Shown here in pieces: positions 3,710 through 45,907 of a stretch of DNA of 64,000 bases. Numbering within the stretch: position 1 is the first letter of the stretch; each line of letters starts with the position of its first letter. The position numbers and the translations under genes were made by a program. A model generated the notes under the pieces. That model saw nothing but the letters and a program-made list of their open reading frames with translations, made no database searches and was not told the DNA's origin. The stretch is taken from the IMG/VR virus record IMGVR_UViG_3300032334_002567, positions 248,001 to 312,000 of that record; one strand, 5' to 3'.

Positions 3710-5119
3710 ATGCCAACAGCAAGAGCATTGGTCGGAGGAGGCGTAGTTTATGACAATACAAATGTTGATTCAAAATATCAACCATACTACCAGTTCAGAG
3801 CAACAGACAGATATCAGATGTATACAGGTAGAAATAATGGTTATATGTATCACGGAAGTGCGAGCATAATGCCCGCATCAACTCTGTACGACGGCAAACC
3901 CGGAGGGAATTATTACTGTAGCAATTTGTTCTCCGGGATTCTTCCGTACCAGAATCCGAACAACCAATGCTATCTGCTCGACAACCTAGGTCAATTAAAT
4001 AGTCCGAGTATCTCTTACTACATGATGTTCGGATTGCCCGTTACCATAACAAAGTACAGATTGTGGAATGGATTTATAGCCAATGTTAAAGCAAATTTGA
4101 GATGGGCATCGGTAAATGATTTCGGCAATGAAACTCCTCAAGACTGGGCGCTTTATGGCACGAACGACGGATTTTCTTGGAATCTTATTGATTCAAGATC
4201 AAGTCAGGCAAGATTGCCGTATGCGACAGCCAATCATGCAAAAGATAGTTCATACAGCGAATTCACAATATCCAATCCGACTCCGTACAAAACCTACAAA
4301 CTTGCTGTGACCAAAGGGGGGAGAACAGCCACCGATTGTAGAAAAAGCGGTTGTAGTTACGCCATGTATCAACTTGGAGAAATGCAACTTTGGGGATATG
4401 AAAGTCCAGACACCAATTGTTCCATACATGGAATTGATACGATATTCCCAAAAGCTGTATATCCCACAAGCAACGGATCTTTAAGTACAGAATCAGTAAT
4501 AACTTACCAAGGAATTAGTTCCTTTTCAAAGATTTTTACTTTATGTCCATCTTACATTGAAGTTAGATCTGATGCCAAGGATGGCGGGGGTAACGCTTGG
4601 CCAGGAAGAGACTCTCACCCTCAAAGCGAATTCGTAAATGGCTCATGGGTGTCCAAATATTGCATACAATCAATTTATTACTATGGATACGGTGTGCCCA
4701 GCAGAATATCTTATGCGTGGGCGAGATCATATGAAGGATGGGGATTTAATTCTAGTCTAACATATGTTCCTATTGGCACCATATGGGGAACAGGCTACAT
4801 AGACTTTGGAGCGTCCGTAACCATTTCTTCTTACAAAATCAGAGGGGGAGCAGAGTGGTATAATGGAGATATTTCTCCCAATTCTTGGACATTATATGGA
4901 TCCAACGATTTCTCGTCCTGGACCAGCATAAGCAACATATCTTCCAATTCCGCCATGAATTATTTGACATACACAAATTTCACTATATCATCCCCATCAT
5001 CGTACAGGTATTATAAAATGGAAATAAAAGGTGGCAAAGCTCAACAATGCGGAAAAAGCGGATGCACCGCATACACGGCCAGAATTTACGACATGCAGAT
5101 AGTGGGGAAAATATCATGA
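3710..5119 (+). CDS. tandem discoidin-like domain protein, paralogous to the C-terminus of 743..3700
   Basis: shares [35 protein letters not shown] and CxKSGC segments with the upstream gene. Confidence 0.7.
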   Translation: MPTARALVGGGVVYDNTNVDSKYQPYYQFRATDRYQMYTGRNNGYMYHGSASIMPASTLYDGKPGGNYYCSNLFSGILPYQNPNNQCYLLDNLGQLNSPSISYYMMFGLPVTITKYRLWNGFIANVKANLRWASVNDFGNETPQDWALYGTNDGFSWNLIDSRSSQARLPYATANHAKDSSYSEFTISNPTPYKTYKLAVTKGGRTATDCRKSGCSYAMYQLGEMQLWGYESPDTNCSIHGIDTIFPKAVYPTSNGSLSTESVITYQGISSFSKIFTLCPSYIEVRSDAKDGGGNAWPGRDSHPQSEFVNGSWVSKYCIQSIYYYGYGVPSRISYAWARSYEGWGFNSSLTYVPIGTIWGTGYIDFGASVTISSYKIRGGAEWYNGDISPNSWTLYGSNDFSSWTSISNISSNSAMNYLTYTNFTISSPSSYRYYKMEIKGGKAQQCGKSGCTAYTARIYDMQIVGKIS

Positions 5120-8156: not shown

Positions 8157-8229
8157 GCTGGTGTAGCACAATTGGCGGTGCAGCTGACCTGTAATCAGCA
8201 GGCTGTGGGTTCAAATCCCACCGCCAGCT
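8157..8229 (+). tRNA. tRNA-Thr(UGU)
   Basis: cloverleaf: GCTGGTG/CGCCAGC acceptor, GCTGA-CCTGTAA-TCAGC anticodon arm, GTGGG-TTCAAAT-CCCAC T arm. Confidence 0.92.
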
Positions 8230-9027: not shown

Positions 9028-10110
9028 ATGCGAATATACCTCAATAACATAGGCGGCAAAAGACTCGTTAGAAGAGCTAATGATAAGAATTATTTAAAGG
9101 CAGTAGTCGCATACTTTGATAATTTCACAACACAATGGACAGCTTTAGGTCTTACGGGACTCGGTAGCGTTGTATCGAAAGTCACCAAAGCTCAACCCGG
9201 TTACGGTCAATATAGCGGCAACATTGCTGGTTTGGGTGCAAAAGTCATGGTTAATGGAACCATTCACATTAATGGAACTATGTACTCAGACGATGAAATT
9301 AATATTTACAAAAATGAAACCATAGTATACGCAACTGGCAGCAGTAGCGGTACTGATTTTACATTTAATGATGTTACATTTTCTGTAATTTATGGAGACA
9401 CTATAAGATTTGGCATACAGCCTCTGCCAGGCTTTGGTGGTGATTATTATGGCACTACTGGTGGCAGTAATGCACCTCTTAGTATTTGGATAGTACCATC
9501 GGGTCCAACACCAACTCCAACACCTGCACCAACATCAACACCAACTCCAACTCCTGGCCCAACTAATACTCCAACCAATACACCAATACCCCCAACTGAT
9601 ACACCAACACCTGGCCCAACTGATACACCAACACCTGTGCCTCCAACTCCAACTCCTGGCCCAACAAATACTCCCACATTAACACCAACTGCTACGCCAA
9701 CACCTGGCCCAGCACCATTTAATAATTTTAATTCTACTTGGAACGCTGTTGGATTTACTGGTTCTGGATCGTCAGGAGACCCATATACGAGAACTTATGC
9801 TCAATACTCCGGCGATATTGGAGGAGCACAGTTTACTGTTATATCTACCGGTACTCTACGCATAACCGGCTTAGTGGGAGAAGATTTTGGTGTAAATATA
9901 TATAAGCAAACTAACGGCGTTGGATCCTTTACTTCTATCTCTTCGTCCGGCGATAATTGGAGTGGCGGCGGTGGTTACTACATTCTTGACTTAACTCTCA
10001 GCGTTTCGGCTAATGACGTTATTCAACTAGATGATACCGGTAATGGATTTAGTATCTGGGGCGGCGGCTTAGGTCAGCCTGCTGGAGCACTTAACATTTG
10101 GTGGCAGTAG
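9028..10110 (+). CDS. Pro/Thr-linker protein with two related beta-rich domains (virion appendage-like)
   Basis: central PTPTP repeat; both flanking domains share FN/F..W.A.G.TG.GS and YSG.I.G segments. Confidence 0.6.
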
Positions 10111-17996: not shown

Positions 17997-18044
17997 TATA
18001 TAAAACTTAAAAATATAATTCTAAATAAAAAGAAGTAAAAACCT

Positions 18045-18617
18045 TTAAAAATTACCGCAAGTCTCATACATCGCTTCGTGGTGTTGATAATTATCTCCAT
18101 TATAAAATAAGTGAAACAAGGTTCCTATGCATGTAGAAGATAAAGTTGATGAGTTATTATTATAAAATGAAATTAATGTTGATTTTGTTTCTTCACAATT
18201 AATACCATTAGGCCAAACTAATGGATTTGGTGTTGAAACACTAGAAGATATGGTAGTAAATGTAAGAGGGCTATAATCTTCTGTCGTATCTGCACTAACG
18301 CCAACTTTAACGGTTCTTGTTTTAAAATTAACATATCCAAGATGATCATAATCTGGAGTATAAAGAGTTAATGCTTTATGTTCAACTATCTCAAACACAA
18401 ATGCCCAGCCAGGAGATGAACTCAAACTTGGTCCCCACGCTGCTTGAACAACTGCTGCATAAGCACCAATTGTAATGTCTCCACAAGTTAAAGGATTGTT
18501 ATACTCCCATGCCGTTCCATAATAAGTATCTTGCTGATTCCATCTAAATTCGTAGTTTTGAGGGTCCGCAGGAGACCACTTCCCACTCAACATACTATAA
18601 ATTGGTCCATCACTCAT
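18045..18617 (-). CDS. DGPIY-leader family protein (inverted copy)
   Basis: starts MSDGPIYSMLSGK. Confidence 0.75.
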   Translation of the reverse strand: MSDGPIYSMLSGKWSPADPQNYEFRWNQQDTYYGTAWEYNNPLTCGDITIGAYAAVVQAAWGPSLSSSPGWAFVFEIVEHKALTLYTPDYDHLGYVNFKTRTVKVGVSADTTEDYSPLTFTTISSSVSTPNPLVWPNGINCEETKSTLISFYNNNSSTLSSTCIGTLFHLFYNGDNYQHHEAMYETCGNF

Positions 18618-24379: not shown

Positions 24380-25465
24380 ATGATTCCACAGGGTGAGTTG
24401 ATTTTCTGGGGGCCGAAGCATGAGGACAATCTTCCTATGCCTAGTAGGGAGGATAGGTTGAAGCGGGTGGACTCTGGCAATCCTTCTAGTCCGTTTAGCC
24501 GGTTCGTTGGTAATGAGCGGGCTGTTCGGAAGATGCAGGCTGCTGTGTATAGTGCGTTGGGCCGTCCGAATCATATCCAGCGTGATTTGGCGTTTGCCAT
24601 CTTTGGGCCTGCGTCTAGTGGCAAGACTACTTTGGCTCGGCTTTATGCTGATTCTGTAGAGTTGCCGTTGGTGGAGGTTAGTCCCAAGAGTATTCGGACT
24701 ACGGATGATCTTTTGGAGTTCATTCGTGCGACTTTGCTGGAGACAGAGGTTCCGTTGGTGGATTGTGGTACGGATCAGTTTGTGTTGCCTCCGATGGTGG
24801 TGTTTATTGACGAGGTTCATGCACTGAGTCGTTCGGTGGTGGATGGTCTGTTGAAGGCTACGGAATATAAGGATGCCATTCTTGTGACGGACGGTGGTTC
24901 AACCGTTGACTGTCATAACGTGACATGGATGATTGCGACAACGGATGAGGGTCGGTTGTTTGATGCGTTCCGTACTCGTTTTAGCCCGATTATGTTGCAG
25001 TATTTGACTAAGGCCGAAGTGGCGAAGATTGTTAGCATGGCTCATAAGGATTTGCCTTCTGAGGTGTGTATGTTGGTGGCTCACTATAACAGTCGGATTC
25101 CCCGTAAGGCTTTGGAGTTTGCTAGGTACATGAAGATGGTTCGTGATATGCACCCTGAGATGACTTGGGAGGACGTTGCCCGTCAGGTTGCTGGTGATGA
25201 GGGGATTGACGAGTATGGGATGCAGGAGCTTCATTTGAAGGTCTTGCGGGCTTTGGGTCAGGGGCCGGTTGCTCGTAATCGTATAAGTTTGGTTGTGGGC
25301 AGGAAGATTGAGGAAGTGGAGCGGTACATCATGCCGTGGCTGTTGAGTGAGACAGAGGATCAGCCTGCGATGGTTACTGTGTCGAGCAAGGGCTATGTGA
25401 TTACTAGGGCTGGGCTTGACGAATTGGAGAAACGTGGTATAAGCTATGTGGCTGAAGCTGCGTGA
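24380..25465 (+). CDS. ruvB: RuvB-like Holliday junction branch migration AAA+ ATPase
   Basis: F..FVGN, GPASSGKTTLA (Walker A), FIDEVHAL (Walker B), ATT..G.L..AFRTRF, PR.A, GID..G...GP...E.Y..P.L C-terminal winged helix; AGGAGG RBS before ATG 24380. Confidence 0.8.
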   Translation: MIPQGELIFWGPKHEDNLPMPSREDRLKRVDSGNPSSPFSRFVGNERAVRKMQAAVYSALGRPNHIQRDLAFAIFGPASSGKTTLARLYADSVELPLVEVSPKSIRTTDDLLEFIRATLLETEVPLVDCGTDQFVLPPMVVFIDEVHALSRSVVDGLLKATEYKDAILVTDGGSTVDCHNVTWMIATTDEGRLFDAFRTRFSPIMLQYLTKAEVAKIVSMAHKDLPSEVCMLVAHYNSRIPRKALEFARYMKMVRDMHPEMTWEDVARQVAGDEGIDEYGMQELHLKVLRALGQGPVARNRISLVVGRKIEEVERYIMPWLLSETEDQPAMVTVSSKGYVITRAGLDELEKRGISYVAEAA

Positions 25466-26198
25466 ACCAATAAGTTCGATTTTGCACACTGAAGAAGTGA
25501 ACCACTTCCATAGATTTAGCAAGTTCTGTGAGTGAACCACTATAGGGAATTTTACACAAAGCCGTAGTGAACCTTGGATGATGATTTTATATTCGCACTG
25601 AGTGAACCATTAGAAGAGATTTTACATGCCCCACGAGTGAACCATTGAAGCCGATTTTACATGATGAAATAGTGAACCACGGTTTAGGATTTTACATTTT
25701 GACAGAGTGAACCAGCCTCGAAGATTTTACACTGAAGTTGAGTGAACCAGGGACCGGGATTTTACATGGGATCCACAGTGAACCAAGTGGTACGATCTTA
25801 CAGTCAAGAAGAGTGAACCATCAAAAGCAATTTTATAGCGACGTTGAGTGAACCAGACTTTCGGATTTTACATCACGACCGAGTGAACCATATCCGCTGA
25901 TTTAAATAACGGAAAAGAGTGAATCACGCAATACGATTTTTAACACAACGCCCGAGTGAACCAAGAAAACGGATTTCAACATAATCCGATAGTGAACCAT
26001 TGGGCATTTTTTTGCAATGAGAGCGAGTGAACCAAATAGATCGATTTTACATACCGTGCGAGTGAACCAGGGGAGAAGATTTTATAGGTTTGGAGAGTGA
26101 ACCGTGTAGATCGATTTAGCATACAGTTCGAGTGAACCAATTCTTCAGATTTTACATGATGAGTAAGTGAACCATAAATTTGATTTAGCATAAAGGAA
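25460..26198 (+). ncRNA. TIGR-like dual-repeat guide RNA array 1 (about 21 units of 35 nt)
   Basis: alternating (G)AGTGAACCA and GATTTTACA repeats separated by unique 8-nt spacers; edge repeats at 25460, 25495, 25530 ... 26130, 26165. Confidence 0.88.
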
Positions 26199-26209
26199 TT
26201 GTACCCTAT

Positions 26210-26539
26210 ATGGATGCTCGGGTAGCTTTGCATACCATGATGTTGGCACTTGGGCGTGAAGGAGCGACTCCGATGGTCAGGATGGAGTCTGGGTACAGTA
26301 TCAAGAACAACAAGTTCCTAAAAAGATTAAAGAAAAAGTTTAAGAGGCACGGGCCGTGCAGGGTTCCAGAATATGAAGATTATTTTCTTCTAAGTTCGGA
26401 ACCTTATTTTGTTTATAAATATGCGGAGATTATTGGTGCAAACAAAATGCCTGAGCCTTTGCATCGAAAGATGTTAAGTTTTGCTATTATGAATCCGAAT
26501 AATTATTATGTGAAGCGTTATTTAAGTCAAAGGAGTTGA
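26210..26539 (+). CDS. phage helical-repeat family protein
   Basis: C-terminal YA......MPE.LHRKML......NNYYVK.Y shared with paralogs. Confidence 0.6.
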   Translation: MDARVALHTMMLALGREGATPMVRMESGYSIKNNKFLKRLKKKFKRHGPCRVPEYEDYFLLSSEPYFVYKYAEIIGANKMPEPLHRKMLSFAIMNPNNYYVKRYLSQRS

Positions 26540-26543
26540 GAAG

Positions 26544-27377
26544 ATGCCTTACCAGCAAAGATTTTTGGTTTTGGATGGCAGCGAAACTTTTAATTATAAT
26601 AGGGCTTCTTCTGATGTTAAGAGTAAACAACCAGCGGCTAAGTTTTGTCCCATTCTTCTGAGTGTTCCAGATAATATCTTCTCAAATTGTAAAAACATTG
26701 AGGATCGTCTTGAAGATTGGGTGAAGAAGGTTTACGCCCAAAAGAATGAATTGCAGCTTTGGTCTGGACATATGTTGGTTGTAATGACAGAGGAGCAGTG
26801 TAGTTCTAATCATCAGATGAATCTTGTATTTAATAGTTATAATTGGAATAATGTTTTACCTTCTTGGCTGAATGTTCCTACTGATGCTACTACAGCAATT
26901 ACATTTGTTAAGGATGTTGGCGTTAATCTTCCTGAGTTTGAGCCTGTAATTAGTCAAGAATCAAAGACAAGTTACGAGTACGCTATTATCTTGAGGAAGA
27001 GATTTGAGATGGGAGAACCGGCTATTGCTAAGGATGCTGGTTTGAGTTGTCGTTATGCTAAGGAAATTATTGGTGGTAGGTTTTTGCTTGGAGAGCCTAC
27101 TATTGCCCAGCATGAACGTGCTGCTGACTTGTATGCTGAGAAGATCAGGGAGTGGCGTTTGTGGGGAGAGTTCAGTCATGAAACCCTGATGACGAGTCCG
27201 GTTTGGATGTATCATTATGCCAAGGATTTTTGTGGAGGTCGTTTGCCTGAGAATCTCCATAATCGGATGTTGATGATGAGTGTGATGGAACCGAATAATT
27301 ATTGGGTGAAGCGGTATAGTGCCAAGAAGTATCAGAAGAAGAAGCGGGCGCCAAAAGCTAATTTAGAAAATGCTTGA
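26544..27377 (+). CDS. phage helical-repeat family protein
   Basis: YA..I...RF..GEP.IA repeats; GRLPENLHNRML...NYWVK. Confidence 0.75.
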   Translation: MPYQQRFLVLDGSETFNYNRASSDVKSKQPAAKFCPILLSVPDNIFSNCKNIEDRLEDWVKKVYAQKNELQLWSGHMLVVMTEEQCSSNHQMNLVFNSYNWNNVLPSWLNVPTDATTAITFVKDVGVNLPEFEPVISQESKTSYEYAIILRKRFEMGEPAIAKDAGLSCRYAKEIIGGRFLLGEPTIAQHERAADLYAEKIREWRLWGEFSHETLMTSPVWMYHYAKDFCGGRLPENLHNRMLMMSVMEPNNYWVKRYSAKKYQKKKRAPKANLENA

Positions 27378-27401
27378 CAAGTCTATTATCTGTGGTATAA
27401 T
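27374..27401 (+). promoter_or_regulatory. strong sigma70-type promoter of array 2
   Basis: TTGACA-16 bp-TATAAT with extended TGn. Confidence 0.85.
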
Positions 27402-27407
27402 GGTTTT

Positions 27408-27555
27408 AACCAAGGTAGTCGATTTTTTAAGTTCAAATAGTGAACCATATTGCCGGATTTTATATCAGGCTGAAGTGAACCATAGCAAAGGATTTTGCAT
27501 CGGCTGAAGAGTGAACCATCGCCCAGTGATTTCAACAAGATCAACAAGTGAATCA
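27408..27555 (+). ncRNA. TIGR-like array 2 (about 4 units)
   Basis: AACCA-aggtagtc-GATTTTTTA-agttcaaa-TAGTGAACCA-tattgccg-GATTTTATA-tcaggctg-AAGTGAACCA-tagcaaag-GATTTTGCA-tcggctgaa-GAGTGAACCA-tcgcccagt-GATTTCAACA-agatcaac-AAGTGAATCA. Confidence 0.85.
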
Positions 27556-28085
27556 TGAATCTGAAGTTTGGCATTAAACCGAGTGACGACGATTGGACGG
27601 CAGAAAAAGAGCTTTCTTATAAAGCTGCTAAGGCTGCTTTTCAAAAGTTTTTTAATGGTGAAAAATTAAGTCGTGAATTAGAGAAGATTATTGCGTCAGA
27701 CGCTACTTGGAGCTGTCAGTATGCTGCTGCATTAAAGGATAGGTTTATACTGGGCGAACCTATTATTGCTTCTAAAGCGAGAACAGCAGGTTGGTATGCT
27801 CGTCATATTATCCGGGGTCCGTGGCCTGAAGGCGAGTCTGGAATATCCCAAAGTGCATATTTCGTATGTGCATATATTTGTGATGTTTTAAACGGGAGCA
27901 GGGTATCTGATTTAATTCACAGAAATATGTTGGCTTTGCTTATAGAAAACCCATCAGATTATTGGGTGCTTGAATATATGCACTATAGAGAATGGCTTGA
28001 TGGTCACGTTGCAGAGCCTAGTTGGGTTCGTCAGGGAAATTGGAATTATGGCGGGGTTACGCAAGAATATTTAAATTCGAATTAG
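27555..28085 (+). CDS. phage helical-repeat family protein
   Basis: YA..L..RF.LGEP.IA, YA..II.GPWPEGE, IHRNML...DYWV. Confidence 0.75.
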   Translation: MNLKFGIKPSDDDWTAEKELSYKAAKAAFQKFFNGEKLSRELEKIIASDATWSCQYAAALKDRFILGEPIIASKARTAGWYARHIIRGPWPEGESGISQSAYFVCAYICDVLNGSRVSDLIHRNMLALLIENPSDYWVLEYMHYREWLDGHVAEPSWVRQGNWNYGGVTQEYLNSN

Positions 28086-28130
28086 GGCAAATGAATTGTA
28101 CCCTATGAAGTTATCGAAAGGAGATTTCTG

Positions 28131-28850
28131 ATGGACATTCTCACTGATAATTGGGTTCAAGTATTCCCTAATATGCTGCATTATGCTTCTAGGACTGGTG
28201 GGCGGGTTCCTGAATTTGAGCCGCTGTTTATTCAGGATGCTGATGCTGCTTCTAGCTATGCAGCTGGATCTATTCATGGGCGTTGGCCAGAAGCAGAAGA
28301 AATTATAGCTACTAATTCTGGTGCTGCTCTTAATTATGCCCGTAAAGTAATTGCGGGTAAGTGGGAACCCGGAGAGGCTGCTATTGCTACTAATCCTAAA
28401 GATAGCTACTGGTATGCCACTTATGTTCTCAAAGGCAGCTTCCCAGAAGGCGAAGCGGAAATTGCTAAACATCCTGACCTTAGTTTTGATTATGCAAGAA
28501 ATGTGATTTATGGTCGGTTTATTGCTGGTGAAGCTGAGATTGGCAAGTTAGAAGTCACTGGCTTTAATCCCAAGATGGCTTTAGATTATATGAATCTTTG
28601 GGTGAAGGGTAATTGGTCGGGTTGGACTGAAGATCAGATTCGTGTGTGTCCTTGTTGGCTGTATAACTATGCCAAGCAGCATTGTAAGGGTAGGCTTCCA
28701 GATAATCTTCATAATGCTATGCTGACATTTGGCATGACAATTAATGAGAATTATTGGGTGAAGAAGTATTTTAAGGCTGCGAAGTACCAGAAGAAGATTA
28801 AGCGGCGCAATCCACCGGAGATGGCTGCTCCTATTGTTATCCCTGATTAA
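28131..28850 (+). CDS. phage helical-repeat family protein
   Basis: four ~23-aa YA..V..G.W.E.E..IA repeats; GRLPDNLHNAML...NYWVK. Confidence 0.8.
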   Translation: MDILTDNWVQVFPNMLHYASRTGGRVPEFEPLFIQDADAASSYAAGSIHGRWPEAEEIIATNSGAALNYARKVIAGKWEPGEAAIATNPKDSYWYATYVLKGSFPEGEAEIAKHPDLSFDYARNVIYGRFIAGEAEIGKLEVTGFNPKMALDYMNLWVKGNWSGWTEDQIRVCPCWLYNYAKQHCKGRLPDNLHNAMLTFGMTINENYWVKKYFKAAKYQKKIKRRNPPEMAAPIVIPD

Positions 28851-28860
28851 GGAGTATTTT

Positions 28861-29046
28861 ATGAATCTATCCCCTCGGCAGTCTTTAGTTCTTAAGGCAA
28901 TTTTGGTTTATGTGGACAAAGATTTGAGTAATATCAATGATTTCTTCACCCAGTTTGACGGGGCATTTGTAGTTAATGGTGAAGACACTCAGCCCATTGA
29001 AGAATCTGAGATTATTGAGCTTTGGAGTTTAGCGGGTGGAAACTGA
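28861..29046 (+). CDS. hypothetical protein
   Basis: AAGGAG RBS before ATG 28861. Confidence 0.6.
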   Translation: MNLSPRQSLVLKAILVYVDKDLSNINDFFTQFDGAFVVNGEDTQPIEESEIIELWSLAGGN

Positions 29047-29539
29047 AAAAGTTATTTTTGATAATGACGAACATTCTATAACGGTTAAACCCGTTACGTT
29101 AATTTTCAATAATACTTATGGGGAGAGTGTATATCCTGAACGGGTAATGATTGATTCAAATATGACTTTGGATCATTTTAAAACCCTAAAGGAGATTGAT
29201 CCTTATACGGCTGCTTTTTTTAAATTTGTTGTGGATGATTATCCTCATCCTGTGATGAAGAGTTTTCTTGAGAAGTCGGCAATTGGATGTCGTCATTTAA
29301 TTGGATTGTTTTCTTTGAGCTTGGAGCTGCTGAGTCAACAGAAAAAGTTCGGTTGGAAGTATCCAGAGGCTAATCTTCATCCTAGACAACAGTTAAATTT
29401 AGCAGATGCTTTGATTGTTTTTGGGCAACCAGAGCGATTTGTTAAATTGGTGAAATATGTGCAAGCTGGGTTCTTTGACCAGTATCAAATGTGTGCAAAA
29501 GAATCTTGGCGTGATGAAGCGTTCAGGGTGATGTCTTGA
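29036..29539 (+). CDS. hypothetical protein
   Basis: 167-aa ORF, GGAG RBS. Confidence 0.65.
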   Translation: METEKVIFDNDEHSITVKPVTLIFNNTYGESVYPERVMIDSNMTLDHFKTLKEIDPYTAAFFKFVVDDYPHPVMKSFLEKSAIGCRHLIGLFSLSLELLSQQKKFGWKYPEANLHPRQQLNLADALIVFGQPERFVKLVKYVQAGFFDQYQMCAKESWRDEAFRVMS

Positions 29540-29563
29540 CATTAGTGTTTTCTGTGGTATACT
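29536..29563 (+). promoter_or_regulatory. sigma70-type promoter of the putative sRNA
   Basis: TTGACA-16 bp-TATACT with extended TGn. Confidence 0.8.
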
Positions 29564-29569
29564 GATCGG

Positions 29570-29766
29570 GCCGATCAAAACTTACCGTGCTTGTGCTGCT
29601 ATGGCATCCAGCAGAAACGGTGACTCAGCGGAAGGTAGTCGGCTGATCTGCCCGTAAGACTCCGGGCAGTTAGCTAAACGTCCGCAGTTCATAACACATT
29701 CACCCTCCGTCCTTTCTAATGTGTGTATGAATAGGTCTGCCTCCTCAAAAGAGGCAGACTTTTTTT
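29570..29766 (+). ncRNA. putative ~200-nt structured small RNA
   Basis: lies between a promoter and an intrinsic terminator, no convincing ORF; helices ACCGT/ACGGT, CTGCT/AGCAG, GCGGA/TCCGC, CTGCCCG/CGGGCAG, TTCATAACACATT/AATGTGTGTATGAA. Confidence 0.7.
29735..29766 (+). terminator. intrinsic terminator
   Basis: GTCTGCCTC-ctcaaaa-GAGGCAGAC followed by T7. Confidence 0.85.
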
Positions 29767-29809
29767 GTACCCTATAGTTTTGTGTTCTCAACTTTTTAGG
29801 AGCTAAACC

Positions 29810-29965
29810 ATGGCTAAGGATGATAAGCCCCAGTTCGATCCTGATAGTGATGATGAGTATGACTATCTCAAGGAGAATTGGGAACCGGGTGATGAGCCTA
29901 TGAATGATCGTCAGCGTCGTGAAAATGAACAGTTGGATGAAGAGTACCGTCGTAACAAGTTTTAA
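29810..29965 (+). CDS. small acidic protein (51 aa)
   Basis: AGGAG RBS; MAKDDKPQFDPDSDDEYDYLKENWEPGDEPMNDRQRRENEQLDEEYRRNKF; below the ORF-track cutoff. Confidence 0.65.
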   Translation: MAKDDKPQFDPDSDDEYDYLKENWEPGDEPMNDRQRRENEQLDEEYRRNKF

Positions 29966-29986
29966 TTTTACAAAAGGAGTTTAACT

Positions 29987-30898
29987 ATGGGTAAGGCTAA
30001 GAAGGCGACTTTAAGTGAAGATGCAATTGAAGTTTTGAGTGGTCTTGGGGAGATTACTCGACTTGATAAAGATTTGAAAAAGCTAATTCGAACTTTGAAT
30101 CGTGATGAGGTTCGGTGCATTGTGAACTATTATTACAATGTGCAGGAGAACCGGATGAGGTCTTCTAAGCAGATTGATGCTGCCAGTAAGGCTGGTACTC
30201 CGCATGATCTGATGGTTTATCTGAATGCCCAAACTCAAGTTTTGGAAAATCAGATTGCTAAGGCTATGGATGAGTGGACTGAGGGGCATCCTGTAGCTAA
30301 GGCTTTGAAGGACAATGTTTATGGTATTGGCCCGATTATTTCAGCGGGTCTGGTTGCTCATTTTGATATTCGTCGGGCTGCTACTGCTGGTGCATTCTGG
30401 CGATATGCTGGTCTTGACCCCACATCTGAGTGGAACAAGGGTGAGAAGCGGCCTTGGAATGCAGCTTTGAAAACTTTGTGTTGGAAGGTCGGCCAGAGTT
30501 TCATGAAGTTCTCTAATGCTACTGATAAAGATACCGGGGCAGCTAAGTGCTTTTACGGTGATCTTTATCGTCAGAAGAAGGCTGAATTGGTTGCTAAGAA
30601 TCAGGGTGGTGGATTTAAGGGTCTGGCGGATAGTGTGTTGAAGGCTAAGAAGTTTCGTGATGTCGCAACTAAAGCAAAATATGAATCAGGGATGCTTCCT
30701 GATGGTCATATTGATGCTATGGCTCGTCGCTGGGCTGTGAAGCTGTTTCTGAGTAATCTGCATGAACTTTGGTGTGCAGCAGAGGGAATTCCGTGTCCTC
30801 GGCCTTATTCGATGGCGATTCAGGGCCATGCTCATTACATCATGCAGCCTGAACTGGCTGATTTGATTAATGTTTGGAAGAATGAAGCTAGGATTTAA
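29987..30898 (+). CDS. TasA-like Nop-domain RNA-binding protein (IS110/IS116 C-terminal fold, no nuclease domain)
   Basis: coiled-coil then YGIGPIISAGLVAHFDI.R..T.GAFWRYAGLDP...G.K..WN..LK..C, Y..LY...K, H....A.R.AVKLFL..L...W; no DEDD RuvC or HNH; dual-repeat arrays nearby. Confidence 0.82.
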   Translation: MGKAKKATLSEDAIEVLSGLGEITRLDKDLKKLIRTLNRDEVRCIVNYYYNVQENRMRSSKQIDAASKAGTPHDLMVYLNAQTQVLENQIAKAMDEWTEGHPVAKALKDNVYGIGPIISAGLVAHFDIRRAATAGAFWRYAGLDPTSEWNKGEKRPWNAALKTLCWKVGQSFMKFSNATDKDTGAAKCFYGDLYRQKKAELVAKNQGGGFKGLADSVLKAKKFRDVATKAKYESGMLPDGHIDAMARRWAVKLFLSNLHELWCAAEGIPCPRPYSMAIQGHAHYIMQPELADLINVWKNEARI

Positions 30899-31777: not shown

Positions 31778-31829
31778 TTTTAAAATATCCATAAAAGAAT
31801 TGTACCCTATAGGTGCAAGGAGAACCCAC

Positions 31830-33173
31830 ATGCCAAGAGCGAAAAAGGTTACGAAGAACGAGCAAGAGATTGTTGATGCTGTCAAGCAGACTCTTGCATC
31901 TTTTAGTGTTTCAGAAGCGGAATACGTCGAGTTCAAGAAAGATATTGAGAACATTGGCTACCGCTATAGCTTGGAGTTCCCTTTTTGGGGAGTGCTGTCG
32001 GAGCGGTGTTCTTTTAGTCTGACTAAGCATCTTGTGCCGACTGCCGGTATTACCAAGACGGGCCATATTATTTTTAATGTGGACTTTGTGAAGGAACTGC
32101 GTGAGAAGCACGGCAAGCTGTATCATAAGAAGATGCTGTTTCTGATTGCACATGAGATTGCCCACTTTGCTTTTGAACACGCCGAGCGGCAGGGTCAGCG
32201 TGATGCCAAAATCTTCAATATTGCTGCTGACTATGCAATCAACCTGCTGTTGCACTACCAGTTCAATGGTAATAGCGATTACTTTATCGAAGGTGGTATG
32301 CTTGATACTTCGTATGACGGCATGAGTGCCGAGCAGATTTACGAACTTATCAAGGATAATTATAAAGGTCGTGGCCGAAGTGATGGTGGTGACGGTGGCG
32401 ACGGTATTGGTAACGATCTTCGTCCTGATCTTACGGAAGAAGATATTGCCAATGGTTCTGCTTCGGTTCGTGAGCGTCGGATTCCTCTTCCTGATCTTCG
32501 TGGGAAGAGTCCCGAGCAAGCGAGGAAGGAACTTGCAGACTGGATTGGTCGTGGAACGCAAGAGGCTTTTGCTGTTGCAAAGTCACAGGGCAAGTTGCCA
32601 TCTGATCTTGAGCGGGCTATTGCCAAGTTGCTCAAGCCACAGATTGACTGGCTGCGGGCTTTGAAGCAGAAGTTGCGTTTCGGTGTTAGCAGGACAGAGA
32701 AGCGGGACGTTACTTGGTCTGTACCTAACCGTCGTTTTCTTGGTGCTGATTTTATTATGCCAAGCAACGTCGGCCCGGATAAGCCCAAGATTGTTTATGC
32801 TATTGACACTAGCGGTAGCATGAGCGAAAGTGATTTGTCACAGGCTGTTAGTGAGTTGGAAGAAATCCGTGTCAAGTACGGTGCTAAGGTTTATATGCTT
32901 GATTGTGACGCTGATGTTCAATCAAGCCGTTGGATCGAACCGCATGAGCCGCTTCCTAAGTTGAAGGGTGGTGGTGGAACTGATTTTGTTCCAGTGTTCA
33001 ACCATCTGATTGAGAAGCGTATCAGGCCGGATTACTGCTGCTTCTTTACTGACGGTTATGGGAACTTCGGTGACGAAAAGCCACCGTTTGAAGTTCTCTG
33101 GGTCATGACGAGTCAGGTTGACCCGCCGTTTGGAGAAGTAGTCAGGGTGAATGTCCCGTATGAGGGGCAATAA
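31830..33173 (+). CDS. DUF2201-type metallopeptidase plus vWA domain protein
   Basis: HEIAH, NIAADYAIN, DTSGSM (MIDAS), GGGGTDF, FTDGYG. Confidence 0.88.
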   Translation: MPRAKKVTKNEQEIVDAVKQTLASFSVSEAEYVEFKKDIENIGYRYSLEFPFWGVLSERCSFSLTKHLVPTAGITKTGHIIFNVDFVKELREKHGKLYHKKMLFLIAHEIAHFAFEHAERQGQRDAKIFNIAADYAINLLLHYQFNGNSDYFIEGGMLDTSYDGMSAEQIYELIKDNYKGRGRSDGGDGGDGIGNDLRPDLTEEDIANGSASVRERRIPLPDLRGKSPEQARKELADWIGRGTQEAFAVAKSQGKLPSDLERAIAKLLKPQIDWLRALKQKLRFGVSRTEKRDVTWSVPNRRFLGADFIMPSNVGPDKPKIVYAIDTSGSMSESDLSQAVSELEEIRVKYGAKVYMLDCDADVQSSRWIEPHEPLPKLKGGGGTDFVPVFNHLIEKRIRPDYCCFFTDGYGNFGDEKPPFEVLWVMTSQVDPPFGEVVRVNVPYEGQ

Positions 33174-33209
33174 AAATTGTACCCTAAAGGTTTGTGAAGG
33201 AGATACCTT

Positions 33210-33596
33210 ATGGCTAAGAAAACTGCTAAGAAGAAGAAACCTGATCTCAGGGAGCTTTATATGCAGGCTTTCAGGGATAAGAAAAGACTTCCAGAGGATC
33301 AAGAAAAGTTGATGGCTAGTGATCCTGAGTTCGCTTATATGTATGCCAAGTATCTTCGTAAGCCTGCGGGCCTACCGAATAATGGTGCTTGGAGTGAAGA
33401 AGAGGAAACCATCTTCTTCAAAAGTCCTAAATGGGCTTATATGTATAGCCTGTTCGTCAGGAAGTCTGACGCTATATGCCGATATATGATGGCTAATGCC
33501 ATTGTTGATGTTGAAGATGATTGGACTAAGCGTTTCTTTGACTTTCACACGGGAGTTGATAAAATCCGTGAAGAGTTAGAGAAAGTCGGAAAATAA
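33210..33596 (+). CDS. phage helical-repeat family protein
   Basis: P..AYMYA repeats; C-terminal D.WTKRF resembling paralogs. Confidence 0.6.
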   Translation: MAKKTAKKKKPDLRELYMQAFRDKKRLPEDQEKLMASDPEFAYMYAKYLRKPAGLPNNGAWSEEEETIFFKSPKWAYMYSLFVRKSDAICRYMMANAIVDVEDDWTKRFFDFHTGVDKIREELEKVGK

Positions 33597-33652
33597 TTGT
33601 ACCCTATAAGTTTGTTCTCGGGGTTTGATTTTTAAACTAAGGAGTTGATTAA

Positions 33653-34732
33653 ATGGCTGAAAAGCTCTTGAGCAGTGCTAATGTCATCACCGGCAGTCTG
33701 GTGAATGAGATTCGTAAGTGCCGGTCTGTTAAGACGAGCAAGGGGAATGGTATCCCCATGTTTATTTATGGTTCGCCTGGTGTGGGCAAGTCAGAGCAGG
33801 TTCATCAGGCTTGTGAGGCCGATGAAACCATGATCGACCTGCGGCTGAATACTCTTGATTCTATTGACCTTCGTGGTCTGCCTGTGGTGAAGAAGGACGA
33901 TAAGGGCAACCCGACTCAGGTGGAGTGGGTTCGTCCTGAGTTTATCCCGTGGAATGGCAAGGGCATTTTGTTCCTTGACGAGATGAACACGGCTGCACCG
34001 TCTGTGCAGAATCCTGCCCTTCAACTGGTGCTTGACCGTAAGGTTGGTTCGCATCATCTTGGGCCGGATTGGTACATCGTTGCGGCTGGCAACAAGGCTG
34101 ATGATCGGGCGCATACCCATCCTCTGTCTGCTGCTCTGCGTCAGCGGTTTGCCATCTATCACTATGAGCCGGATAAGGATACTTGGAGCAACTGGGCGGT
34201 CAAGAACAACATTCACCCGAACGTCATCGGGTTTATTAGTTTCAAGCCCGACCTGTTGATCCAGCCGCCTCTGGATGATGAGGGTGCTAACCCGAGTCCC
34301 CGTAGCTGGTATTACGTTTCGCAGCGGCTTTATGCCGACCAGTGCGAAACCAGTGATATTCGTGCGATGGTGGGTAGTGCTGCTAACGAGTTCATGGCTT
34401 ATCAGGCTGTCTGTGCCAAGATTCCGAACATTTCGGAAATTATCAATGGTAAGACTACGTTCAAGGAAGATAACAAGAACGTAACCATGAGCTATGCTGT
34501 CAGCACGGCGTTGTCGATTCATCTGCTTCGGTCAAAGTATACGACCGAGCATGTGAATAACTGCTTCAAGGGTGCTATCAACAACATGGCCGGTGAGCCG
34601 AGCATGGTGTTTATGCGGCAGTGCTTGATTCAGGGTGATGAGAAGATGAAGGCCGTCATCATCTCTTGCGACGAAGGCAAGAAGTGGTTCGACAAGCACG
34701 GCGAACATCTCCAGAAGGCTGTCAACTTCTAA
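33653..34732 (+). CDS. MoxR-like AAA+ ATPase
   Basis: GSPGVGKS, DLRGLP, LFLDEMN, AAGN, L.AALRQRF, PSPRSW. Confidence 0.9.
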   Translation: MAEKLLSSANVITGSLVNEIRKCRSVKTSKGNGIPMFIYGSPGVGKSEQVHQACEADETMIDLRLNTLDSIDLRGLPVVKKDDKGNPTQVEWVRPEFIPWNGKGILFLDEMNTAAPSVQNPALQLVLDRKVGSHHLGPDWYIVAAGNKADDRAHTHPLSAALRQRFAIYHYEPDKDTWSNWAVKNNIHPNVIGFISFKPDLLIQPPLDDEGANPSPRSWYYVSQRLYADQCETSDIRAMVGSAANEFMAYQAVCAKIPNISEIINGKTTFKEDNKNVTMSYAVSTALSIHLLRSKYTTEHVNNCFKGAINNMAGEPSMVFMRQCLIQGDEKMKAVIISCDEGKKWFDKHGEHLQKAVNF

Positions 34733-45638: not shown

Positions 45639-45907
45639 GGAAGCGTAGCTCAGTTGGTAGAGCATCGGACTTCAAATAGGAGTGCTTATCGGGAAACTGA
45701 TAAAGTAGAACTGCTCAAATTCGGTGAACGCTTAACTGCCAATACCGAGCCAAGCCTAGAAATAGGAAGGTGTAGAGACTTGACGGGCAGCACCTAAAGT
45801 TGAAAAACAATGGTGAAGGTAAAGTCCAGACCACAAACAGAAATGGTAACGAAAGTTATAGTGGTAAGTTAATCCGTTGGTCCTGGGTTCGAGTCCCAGC
45901 GCTTCCA
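45639..45907 (+). tRNA. tRNA-Lys(UUU) interrupted by a group I intron (exons 45639-45672 and 45869-45907)
   Basis: GGAAGCG/CGCTTCC acceptor; spliced loop CT-TTT-AA; T arm CTGGG-TTCGAGT-CCCAG. Confidence 0.85.
45673..45868 (+). ncRNA. self-splicing group I intron (IC3-like), 196 nt, no ORF
   Basis: P1 ACTTC/GGAGT with U.G at the 5' splice site; CAAATTCGGTGAA, ATACCGAGCCAAG, GTGTAGAGACTTGACGG and AAGGTAAAGTCC core elements; terminal G. Confidence 0.85.

Follow-up and report, generated by a model that had tools for sequence, protein, structure and literature searches.

A dual-repeat TIGR-TasA system on a 381-kb phage contig, with a nuclease-free effector that probably binds DNA by guide rather than cutting it

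Introduction

What is a phage doing with two arrays of alternating short repeats and, downstream of them on the same strand, a gene that Pfam and PHROGs name only as an IS116/IS110/IS902 'transposase'? The question is raised by positions 248,001-312,000 of IMGVR_UViG_3300032334_002567, a viral contig of 381,443 bp; this 64-kb stretch, which amounts to 17% of the phage genome, is termed the window, and coordinates given without a locus label are those of the window. A first-pass annotation had proposed that the window carries a TIGR-Tas locus, and this is borne out by the arrays, by the sequence and fold of the Tas protein and by the existence of array-bearing relatives. The explanation that we favour, at a probability of about 0.85, is a dual-repeat TIGR-TasA system that binds DNA by guide rather than cutting it.

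Since the first description of TIGR-Tas systems in 2025, catalogues have come to list more than 20,000 tas loci and 4,126 dual-repeat arrays; hence, the existence of one more locus is no surprise. It belongs to the known family, and the variant features claimed for it are minor. Neither the contig nor its repeat appears in the accessible part of the supplements of the Science paper, and at the DNA level 24300-32000 matches no phage in GenBank. A second contig, which comes from a different metagenome, is base-for-base identical across the 16.9 kb compared. For comparison we fetched 139 loci, which are labelled with L-numbers (e.g. L003-L005, L136, L138-L140).

Architecture of the arrays

The two arrays are as follows:

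25460..26199 (end approximate), + strand: TIGR array 1, 21 units
27403..27560 (end approximate), + strand: TIGR array 2, 4-5 units

Both lie where the first-pass annotation had placed two arrays of alternating short repeats with 8-nucleotide (nt) spacers, and its figure of about 25 guides agrees with the 21 + 4 that we count, some of them degenerate. The usual unit of 35 nt consists of the edge repeat (G)AGTGAACCA, an 8-nt spacer A, the loop repeat GATTTTACA and an 8-nt spacer B; the edge, GAGTGAACCA, is 10 nt long and the loop 9 nt. In array 1 the period is 35 nt in 16 units and 36-37 nt in four, while the last unit has no edge repeat following it; the units at 25881-25990 combine periods of 36-37 nt with degenerate loops. 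Its first edge includes the TGA stop codon of the gene upstream, and its end directly precedes a phage motif, TGTACCCTAT, at 26200. Array 2 starts with the 5'-truncated edge GTTTTAACCA, continues with three good units and ends in a degenerate one, which overlaps the ATG (27555) of the following gene. A truncated first edge of this kind has already been described for TIGR arrays (PMC12045711). A search for terminators after the arrays found none for either of them.

The repeats stand out sharply from the rest of the window. There are 21 exact copies of the 9-mer AGTGAACCA in the 64 kb, 20 of them inside the arrays and all 20 on the + strand; shuffling predicts 0.65 copies, and none of 100 shuffles reached 21. 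Column by column, the repeat cores carry about 2 bits of information and both 8-nt spacers about 0.1 bit. The two repeats share their terminal motifs: the edge reads GA-GTGAAC-CA and the loop GA-TTTTA-CA, an arrangement fit for binding by a symmetric dimer, with box D at the 5' end and box C at the 3' end.

Two other identities were considered for the arrays and rejected. CRISPR-Cas loci have a single repeat of 25-36 nt, spacers of similar size and cas genes; here there are two repeats of 9-10 nt with 8-nt spacers, and no Cas domain is found in the neighbouring open reading frames (ORFs). Box C/D small ribonucleoproteins (sRNPs) are recognised by RUGAUGA/CUGA boxes with a K-turn and by fibrillarin and L7Ae as partners; the units of these arrays are without RUGAUGA/CUGA boxes.

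The arrays do match what defines a TIGR-Tas array, namely two different repeats of 8-12 nt that alternate, with two variable spacers of 8-12 nt between them and a unit of about 36 nt. Their architecture is the published dual-repeat one (PMC12045711). Their GA...CA termini are unlike the UG...CCA of TasR, yet they covary between edge and loop, and such covariation of the terminal motifs of the two repeats is described in the same study (PMC12045711). The distance from the effector gene is likewise within what is known: with all three on the same strand, tasA begins 2.43 kb past the end of array 2 and 3.8 kb past that of array 1, and the Science study searched for arrays within 5 kb either side of tas, so that distant upstream arrays of this sort fall inside the published range.

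The Tas protein

The protein and the two parts of it discussed below are encoded as follows:

29987..30898, + strand: tasA, 303 amino acids (aa), TIGR-associated, Nop domain only and no nuclease domain (from sequence and predicted fold)
30101..30283, + strand: two long helices, H39-69 and H74-99 (residues 39-99), from AlphaFold, pLDDT (predicted local distance difference test) 90-97, and from structure alignment to TasH/TasR
30806..30829, + strand: codons Y274 to H281 (PYSMAIQGH), from BLASTP alignment to Y289/H296 of SpTasH

The ORF of 303 aa is present about 2.4 kb past array 2, as had been reported. The IS110/IS116 signature that had been read in its C-terminal domain is there in the sense that Pfam Transposase_20 (IS116/IS110/IS902) matches it; the match is weak, with E=1e-3 and 19.9 bits as against a cut-off of 21.3 bits. 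The relationship to Tas proteins is far clearer: in a phmmer search of the PDB the only matches were TasR (9mty, E=1e-11) and the TasH of Salicola phage CGphi29 (21kl, 5.5e-10). The protein has 3,032 homologs at E<=1e-3, mostly of 260-310 aa, and an AlphaFold model built from 38 homologs (pLDDT 88.9, predicted template-modelling score 0.85) is entirely helical. In a Foldseek comparison with the PDB, a check to which the first-pass annotation had pointed, the best 11 matches are all TasH/TasR complexes, with probability 1.0 and template-modelling scores up to 0.73; the IS621/ISCro4 recombinases follow at E of about 0.02 and Nop5 at 1.5.

These results bear directly on the database name of the protein. 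Taken at face value, 'transposase' would make it the remnant of an IS110-family element lying near a minisatellite by chance, with no guide system at all. The model, however, has neither a DEDD/RuvC-like N-terminal domain nor a β-sheet, the Foldseek E-values of TasH/TasR are better than those of IS621/ISCro4 by about five orders of magnitude, members of the protein family are accompanied by arrays on 12 further contigs, and the repeats have the paired GA...CA ends expected for a symmetric dimer; we accordingly give the remnant practically no chance.

Nor is there any sign of a nuclease: the model is devoid of a β-sheet, HNH or RuvC domain, and no Pfam nuclease family matches. Only 38 residues precede the coiled-coil hairpin, and residues 1-40 contain no Cys or His. 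An all-helical model that lacks HNH and RuvC and matches Tas proteins identifies the protein as a TasA, and the nuclease-less TasA-type effector that had been postulated thereby stands. In the predicted structure, the helices of residues 39-99 correspond to the Tas domain for coiled-coil dimerisation and for reading the guide duplex. Toward the C-terminus, Y274 and H281 have the same spacing as Y289 and H296 of SpTasH, whose native numbering was checked, and which catalyse the processing of the precursor guide RNA (pre-tigRNA) in that protein (PMC13421893). H281 is invariant among the 38 homologs, and the column of the tyrosine holds Y or F. The segment lies in a flexible C-terminal loop, with pLDDT below 50 at residues 278-281.

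Relatives of the system

Twelve further viral contigs carry a Tas protein that is 34-64% identical together with a dual-repeat array of the same kind, which in eleven of them is immediately recognisable. The closest relatives, L003-L005 (Tas 63-64% identical), have the edge GAGTGAACCA, the loop GATTTTAACA, 8-nt spacers and a 36-nt period, with arrays either immediately after tas or 2 kb past it; the arrays of L007-L016 are built from GAGCGAGCCA-type or AACGAGTCA/AGAGAACCA-type repeats. Seen against these, framing the locus as a 'variant' on account of its 35-nt period was an overstatement: the loop is one base shorter than GATTTTAACA of the closest relatives. The 8-nt spacers, which had also been taken as a departure, were already known from the 8+8-nt SpTIGR array of Salicola phage CGphi29 (PMC12045711), which in the phage record reads AAGCGAGCCA / 8 / AAGACAACCA / 8.

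L136, from a phage with a related backbone, has a RuvB-like protein 71% identical to that of the window and the same TGTACCCTAW promoter motif (see below), but its Tas is just 45% identical. Two large insertions, of which one is rich in Cys, interrupt that Tas (L136:10001-11191), and the sole array is a 2-unit one at 18040-18130, 7 kb downstream. L003-L005 have a closer Tas than L136 and yet are without the motif. Going by these sequence comparisons, the pattern hints at exchange of the system between phages.

Shared guides and the evolution of the arrays

The window (25881-25916) and the end of the L004 array (L004:10448-10483) share one guide pair, TATCCGCT/ACGGAAAA, without a single difference. 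The Tas proteins of the two phages are 63% identical, and the chance of an identical guide pair is about 1e-7. A second pair is near-identical, with the same spacer B and 6/8 bases of spacer A shared between 25954 in the window and L004:9373. Among the relatives there is also a swapped pair: ACCTGCTT is spacer A with AGGACGAG as spacer B in L003:10883 and L005:11772, and is spacer B with AGGACGAA as spacer A in L004:9086. The two arrangements encode one 16-bp target read from opposite strands, and shuffled controls yield 0.095 such events. These shared and swapped guides are modest but new clues, at the level of sequence, to guides under constraint.

Half-spacers also recur in other pairings: AGGTAGTT is joined to three different A spacers and ATGTGCGA to two. 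In L004 a block of several units is duplicated (9511-9691 and 9837-10017), with later point differences in the spacers, which indicates that arrays grow at least partly by duplication and drift.

An idea that goes beyond this, and that we hold only tentatively and at well under even odds, is that selection maintains the guides of the clade on account of specific 16-bp sites that lie outside the phage genome: tigRNAs made early by the host RNA polymerase would, together with TasA, silence genes of the host or of rival phages while the jumbo phage infects. The swapped A/B pair in different phages would then mean that the capture of guides from double-stranded targets can go in either orientation. 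If true, such sites would be the first natural targets, and the swapped pair the first clue to how TIGR spacers are acquired.

A different question is whether the locus is a decaying relic, with drifting repeats and a protein that is non-functional or kept for some other reason. The degenerate loops at 25881-25990, the degenerate terminal units, the missing terminators, the gap of 2.4-4.5 kb to tasA and the absence of identifiable targets would all suit decay. Against it, the tasA ORF is intact and keeps all 38 invariant residues of the family; the repeat cores are nearly invariant next to unconstrained spacers; consensus promoters stand directly before both arrays; the locus is unchanged over the 16.9 kb shared with the second metagenome contig; and a guide pair has been conserved between phages whose Tas proteins have diverged to the extent given above. 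Decay is therefore extremely unlikely in our estimation.

Promoters and genomic neighbourhood

The predicted starts of transcription are the following:

25416..25443, + strand: putative sigma-70-type promoter with extended -10 (TTGACG, 16 nt, TGgTATAAG), by consensus match only
27374..27401, + strand: predicted sigma-70 promoter of array 2 (TTGACA, 16 nt, TGgTATAAT; 12/12 positions), by consensus match
29536..29563, + strand: strong sigma-70 promoter (TTGACA, 16 nt, TGgTATACT), by consensus match
29766..29775, + strand: phage-specific promoter-like motif TGTACCCTAT, upstream of a small acidic ORF (29810-29965) and tasA

The first of these falls within a RuvB/clamp-loader-like gene, at its 3' end, and some 17 nt separate it from the first edge of array 1 downstream. 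GTGGTATA is common to the promoters at 25416, 27374 and 29536, and TCTGTGGTATA to the one at 29536 and that of array 2. The last entry is a copy of the motif (aaaataat)TGTACCCTAW, of which 43-44 copies occur at 24016-63412 as against 2.9 expected; all but two are on the + strand and they lie 25-60 nt before start codons (e.g. 24339, 26200, 28097, 29766, 31357, 31801). The motif is found again in L136, and it is probably the phage's own type of promoter; transcription of the tasA unit probably starts from the copy at 29766-29775.

Just upstream of tasA, the region 29536-29768 would give a structured RNA of about 200 nt (folding z-score -3.9) with a strong terminator at 29733-29761. It belongs to no Rfam family and has no homolog among the related loci. 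As an accessory or tracr-like RNA it was rejected: it has no complementarity to the repeats, the stretch AAGGTAGTCG that it shares is in the same sense, and the partner half-site is unmatched. Within an Asp-rich 51-aa ORF immediately before tasA, 29817-29863 (+ strand) gives a weak Rfam match to an archaeal box C/D small RNA (sR5, 19 bits as against a 40-bit cut-off, E=0.036), most likely due to GAT-GAT codons.

Between the arrays and tasA lie four paralogous helical-repeat proteins and two small ORFs. The paralogs (26210-28850, + strand) are made of helical repeats of about 26 aa with a conserved ...LHxxML...NYWVKxY tail and form a small family of 41 homologs, some members of which are fused to a helix-turn-helix domain. 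The family always adjoins the RuvB/clamp-loader-like gene, also in phages without tas. As partners of the TIGR system the paralogs were rejected, the block of RuvB-like and repeat-protein genes being found in L138-L140 without tas or arrays. The genes that separate the arrays from the effector had been called unrelated, and the occurrence of the same module in tas-less phages agrees with this: the arrays occupy intergenic gaps of a conserved phage module.

The neighbourhood is where a separate effector might be sought. TasA could provide targeting only and recruit a nuclease or other effector, by which the targets would be destroyed or modified; fusions to nucleases (TasH, TasR) have arisen repeatedly, and ParB-like partners are operonic with some TasA (PMC12045711). 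Near the locus, however, neither a trans-acting nuclease nor a ParB-like partner was found. The gene at 31800-33173, which PHROGs labels 'HNH endonuclease', was tried as a nuclease acting in trans and set aside, since Pfam makes it a DUF2201 metallopeptidase with a VWA domain. The genes between the arrays and tasA are those of the module known without tas, and across the loci examined the arrays are the only conserved neighbours of tas. Recruitment of an effector is thus very unlikely.

The region 31800-34732 (+ strand) as a whole encodes the DUF2201 metallopeptidase/VWA protein beside a MoxR-type AAA ATPase. Elsewhere the window contains a group I intron at 45662-45849 (Rfam, 52 bits) and six tRNA genes (Thr, Glu, Gln, Arg and two Leu) at 8157, 36552, 36840, 39661, 46124 and 62564. 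At 1656-2625 and 9505-9711, long imperfect tandem units of ACACCAAC type lie inside large tail-like ORFs and would be Thr/Pro-rich if translated.

Proposed mechanism and the search for targets

While the anatomy of the locus and its homologies are described here directly, its expression, processing and binding would follow by homology with FpTasA, SpTasH, TaTasR and MbTasA. Each array would be transcribed from its own sigma-70-type promoter. A TasA dimer would bind edge and loop repeats by their GA...CA termini (box D and box C) and, via Y274/H281, may cut the precursor within the edge repeats into 35-nt tigRNAs. These are predicted to guide TasA to 16-bp sites in double-stranded DNA that read spacerA+revcomp(spacerB), with no protospacer-adjacent motif (PAM). 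The outcome would be stable binding and bending of the DNA, with transcription or replication of the target blocked; binding is expected instead of cutting because there is no nuclease. That such a system may silence rather than cut had been suggested by the first-pass annotation, and would agree with the repression shown in 2026 for another TasA, MbTasA.

Several points weigh against this mechanism. Without terminators, transcription may read through from the arrays into downstream genes, and several units are degenerate (25881-25990 and the last unit of each array). The loop is 9 nt long and ends in ACA rather than CCA, so that the contacts between loop and protomer may differ from those in the solved complexes. 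With Y or F in the tyrosine column, self-processing is not guaranteed across the family. As to precedents, the MbTasA study centres on systems of the stem-loop type (bioRxiv 10.64898/2026.09.09.750476), and the dual-repeat FpTasA has been shown only to bind 36-nt RNA (PMC12045711). The remaining points concern targets. These were searched on both strands as spacerA+revcomp(spacerB), a geometry that we derived from the 8-nt 3' overhangs and the 'C-5 rule' of published work, and in the reverse order, with partner-shuffled guides as controls. In the 64-kb window there is no 16-bp target with <=1 mismatch in either order, even with gaps of 0-2 bp allowed; the guides of the window and of L003-L005 show no excess over controls when compared with each other's flanks; and the window guides, compared with the 139 loci, gave the ascertained 14-mer matches and 2 others, where 1.5 are expected. 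The paired-spacer search that had been suggested, in the part of it run on the phage's own DNA, thus came out empty.

Other searches were no more productive. Window matches with 2-3 mismatches do not exceed those of partner-shuffled controls, and half-spacer 8-mers have 2.74 matches each in the window as compared with 3.7 +/- 0.5 for the natural 8-mers of another phage, i.e. no enrichment. When IMG/VR was scanned for the 14-nt core of the target of the conserved guide, more than 117 unrelated matches came up, with flanking bases at chance frequencies, which means that a brute scan cannot find targets as short as these; the literature too warns about short spacers in target searches.

Could the same TIGR-TasA machinery instead act as a developmental switch on genes of the phage itself? 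The arrays stand under host-type sigma-70 promoters and tasA and 43 other genes behind the phage motif, a division that suits temporal control. Further, the conserved guide (unit 25881; target TATCCGCTTTTTCCGT) agrees with 5049-5064 in 14/16 positions, and the two mismatches fall on the outer, 5'-most spacer positions, where mismatches are tolerated (PMC13421893). This match is within chance expectation, though, and the site is not at a promoter; it belongs to the 3'-terminal part of the tail-like gene 3710-5119, and the ATGA in which the start of the next gene overlaps the stop follows 52 nt later. Homologs of that gene were sought in the relatives, and only the phage's own contigs matched. 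More generally, matches in the window with <=2 mismatches only equal those of the partner-shuffled controls. If all 25 guides had one self-target each, about 4 would be expected in the window, and the probability of finding none is 0.01, which makes wholesale self-targeting unlikely. On balance we consider a switch of the phage's own genes unlikely. The targets of the TIGR-TasA system that we favour are probably mainly outside the phage's own genome, with host DNA or competing mobile elements the likelier choice.

Significance

The locus is a complete-looking dual-repeat TasA system on a very long phage contig, accompanied by relatives: a genomic context that the field says is lacking, and that serves both the finding of natural targets and the study of array evolution. 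The shared guide pair, the swapped pair and the segmental duplication are small, checkable clues to both. With its compact 303-aa protein and 8+8-nt guides, the system is also a candidate for programmable repression.

Comparison with known systems

The system most like this one is SpTIGR-TasH of Salicola phage CGphi29 (PDB 9w03, 9w04, 21kl), which is likewise phage-encoded and has a dual-repeat array with 8+8-nt spacers. Its edge, AAGCGAGCCA, is visibly related to the edge AGTGAACCA/GAGTGAACCA here, and its Nop domain is 27% identical over 190 aa and has the Y/H processing pair at the same 7-residue spacing. It differs in three respects: SpTasH, which bears an HNH nuclease at its N-terminus, cuts both strands, whereas the protein here is without a nuclease; the SpTIGR loop AAGACAACCA has 10 nt in a 36-nt unit, as against the 9 nt of GATTTTACA in a 35-nt unit; and the SpTIGR array is directly downstream of its gene, while the arrays here are 2.4-4.5 kb upstream. 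TaTasR (PDB 9mty) has the same scaffold of Nop domain and coiled coil (Foldseek probability 1.0), and its array too is of the dual-repeat type with terminal box D/box C motifs common to edge and loop; unlike the protein described here, it has an active RuvC domain, and its repeats have UG...CCA motifs and 9-nt spacers.

Farther away, the IS110/IS621 recombinases and the archaeal box C/D protein Nop5 have a Nop-type RNA-binding domain in common with TasA. In contrast to them, the system here has no DEDD domain, bridge RNA or fibrillarin/L7Ae, and its guides are arrayed. The nuclease-free CRISPR systems (type IV, V-M and Cas12k) resemble it in having guide arrays on mobile elements and in binding without cutting; their proteins are, however, unrelated, and they use a single long spacer that reads one strand, one type of repeat and a PAM.

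The closest counterparts in activity are to be found among the nuclease-free Tas proteins. FpTasA of Flavonifractor plautii, the type example of dual-repeat TIGR-TasA, which we compared by its published description, is a Nop-only Tas with a dual-repeat array, as here, and binds unit-length 36-nt tigRNAs (PMC12045711); it comes from a bacterial locus with 9+9-nt spacers and a 36-nt unit. TIGR targeting uses both strands and needs no PAM (PMC12045711). MbTasA, PlTasA and a dead-RuvC TasR have been shown to bind DNA in a guide-dependent manner without a nuclease (bioRxiv 10.64898/2026.09.09.750476; 10.64898/2026.08.11.744272). MbTasA binds DNA and represses transcription (bioRxiv 10.64898/2026.09.09.750476), and the repression by MbTasA and CsTasR is reversible (bioRxiv 10.64898/2026.09.09.750476; 10.64898/2026.08.11.744272); an activity of this kind is what we predict for the protein of this phage. 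Set against MbTasA, PlTasA and the dead-RuvC TasR, the system of this phage is of the dual-repeat type, with the loop present.

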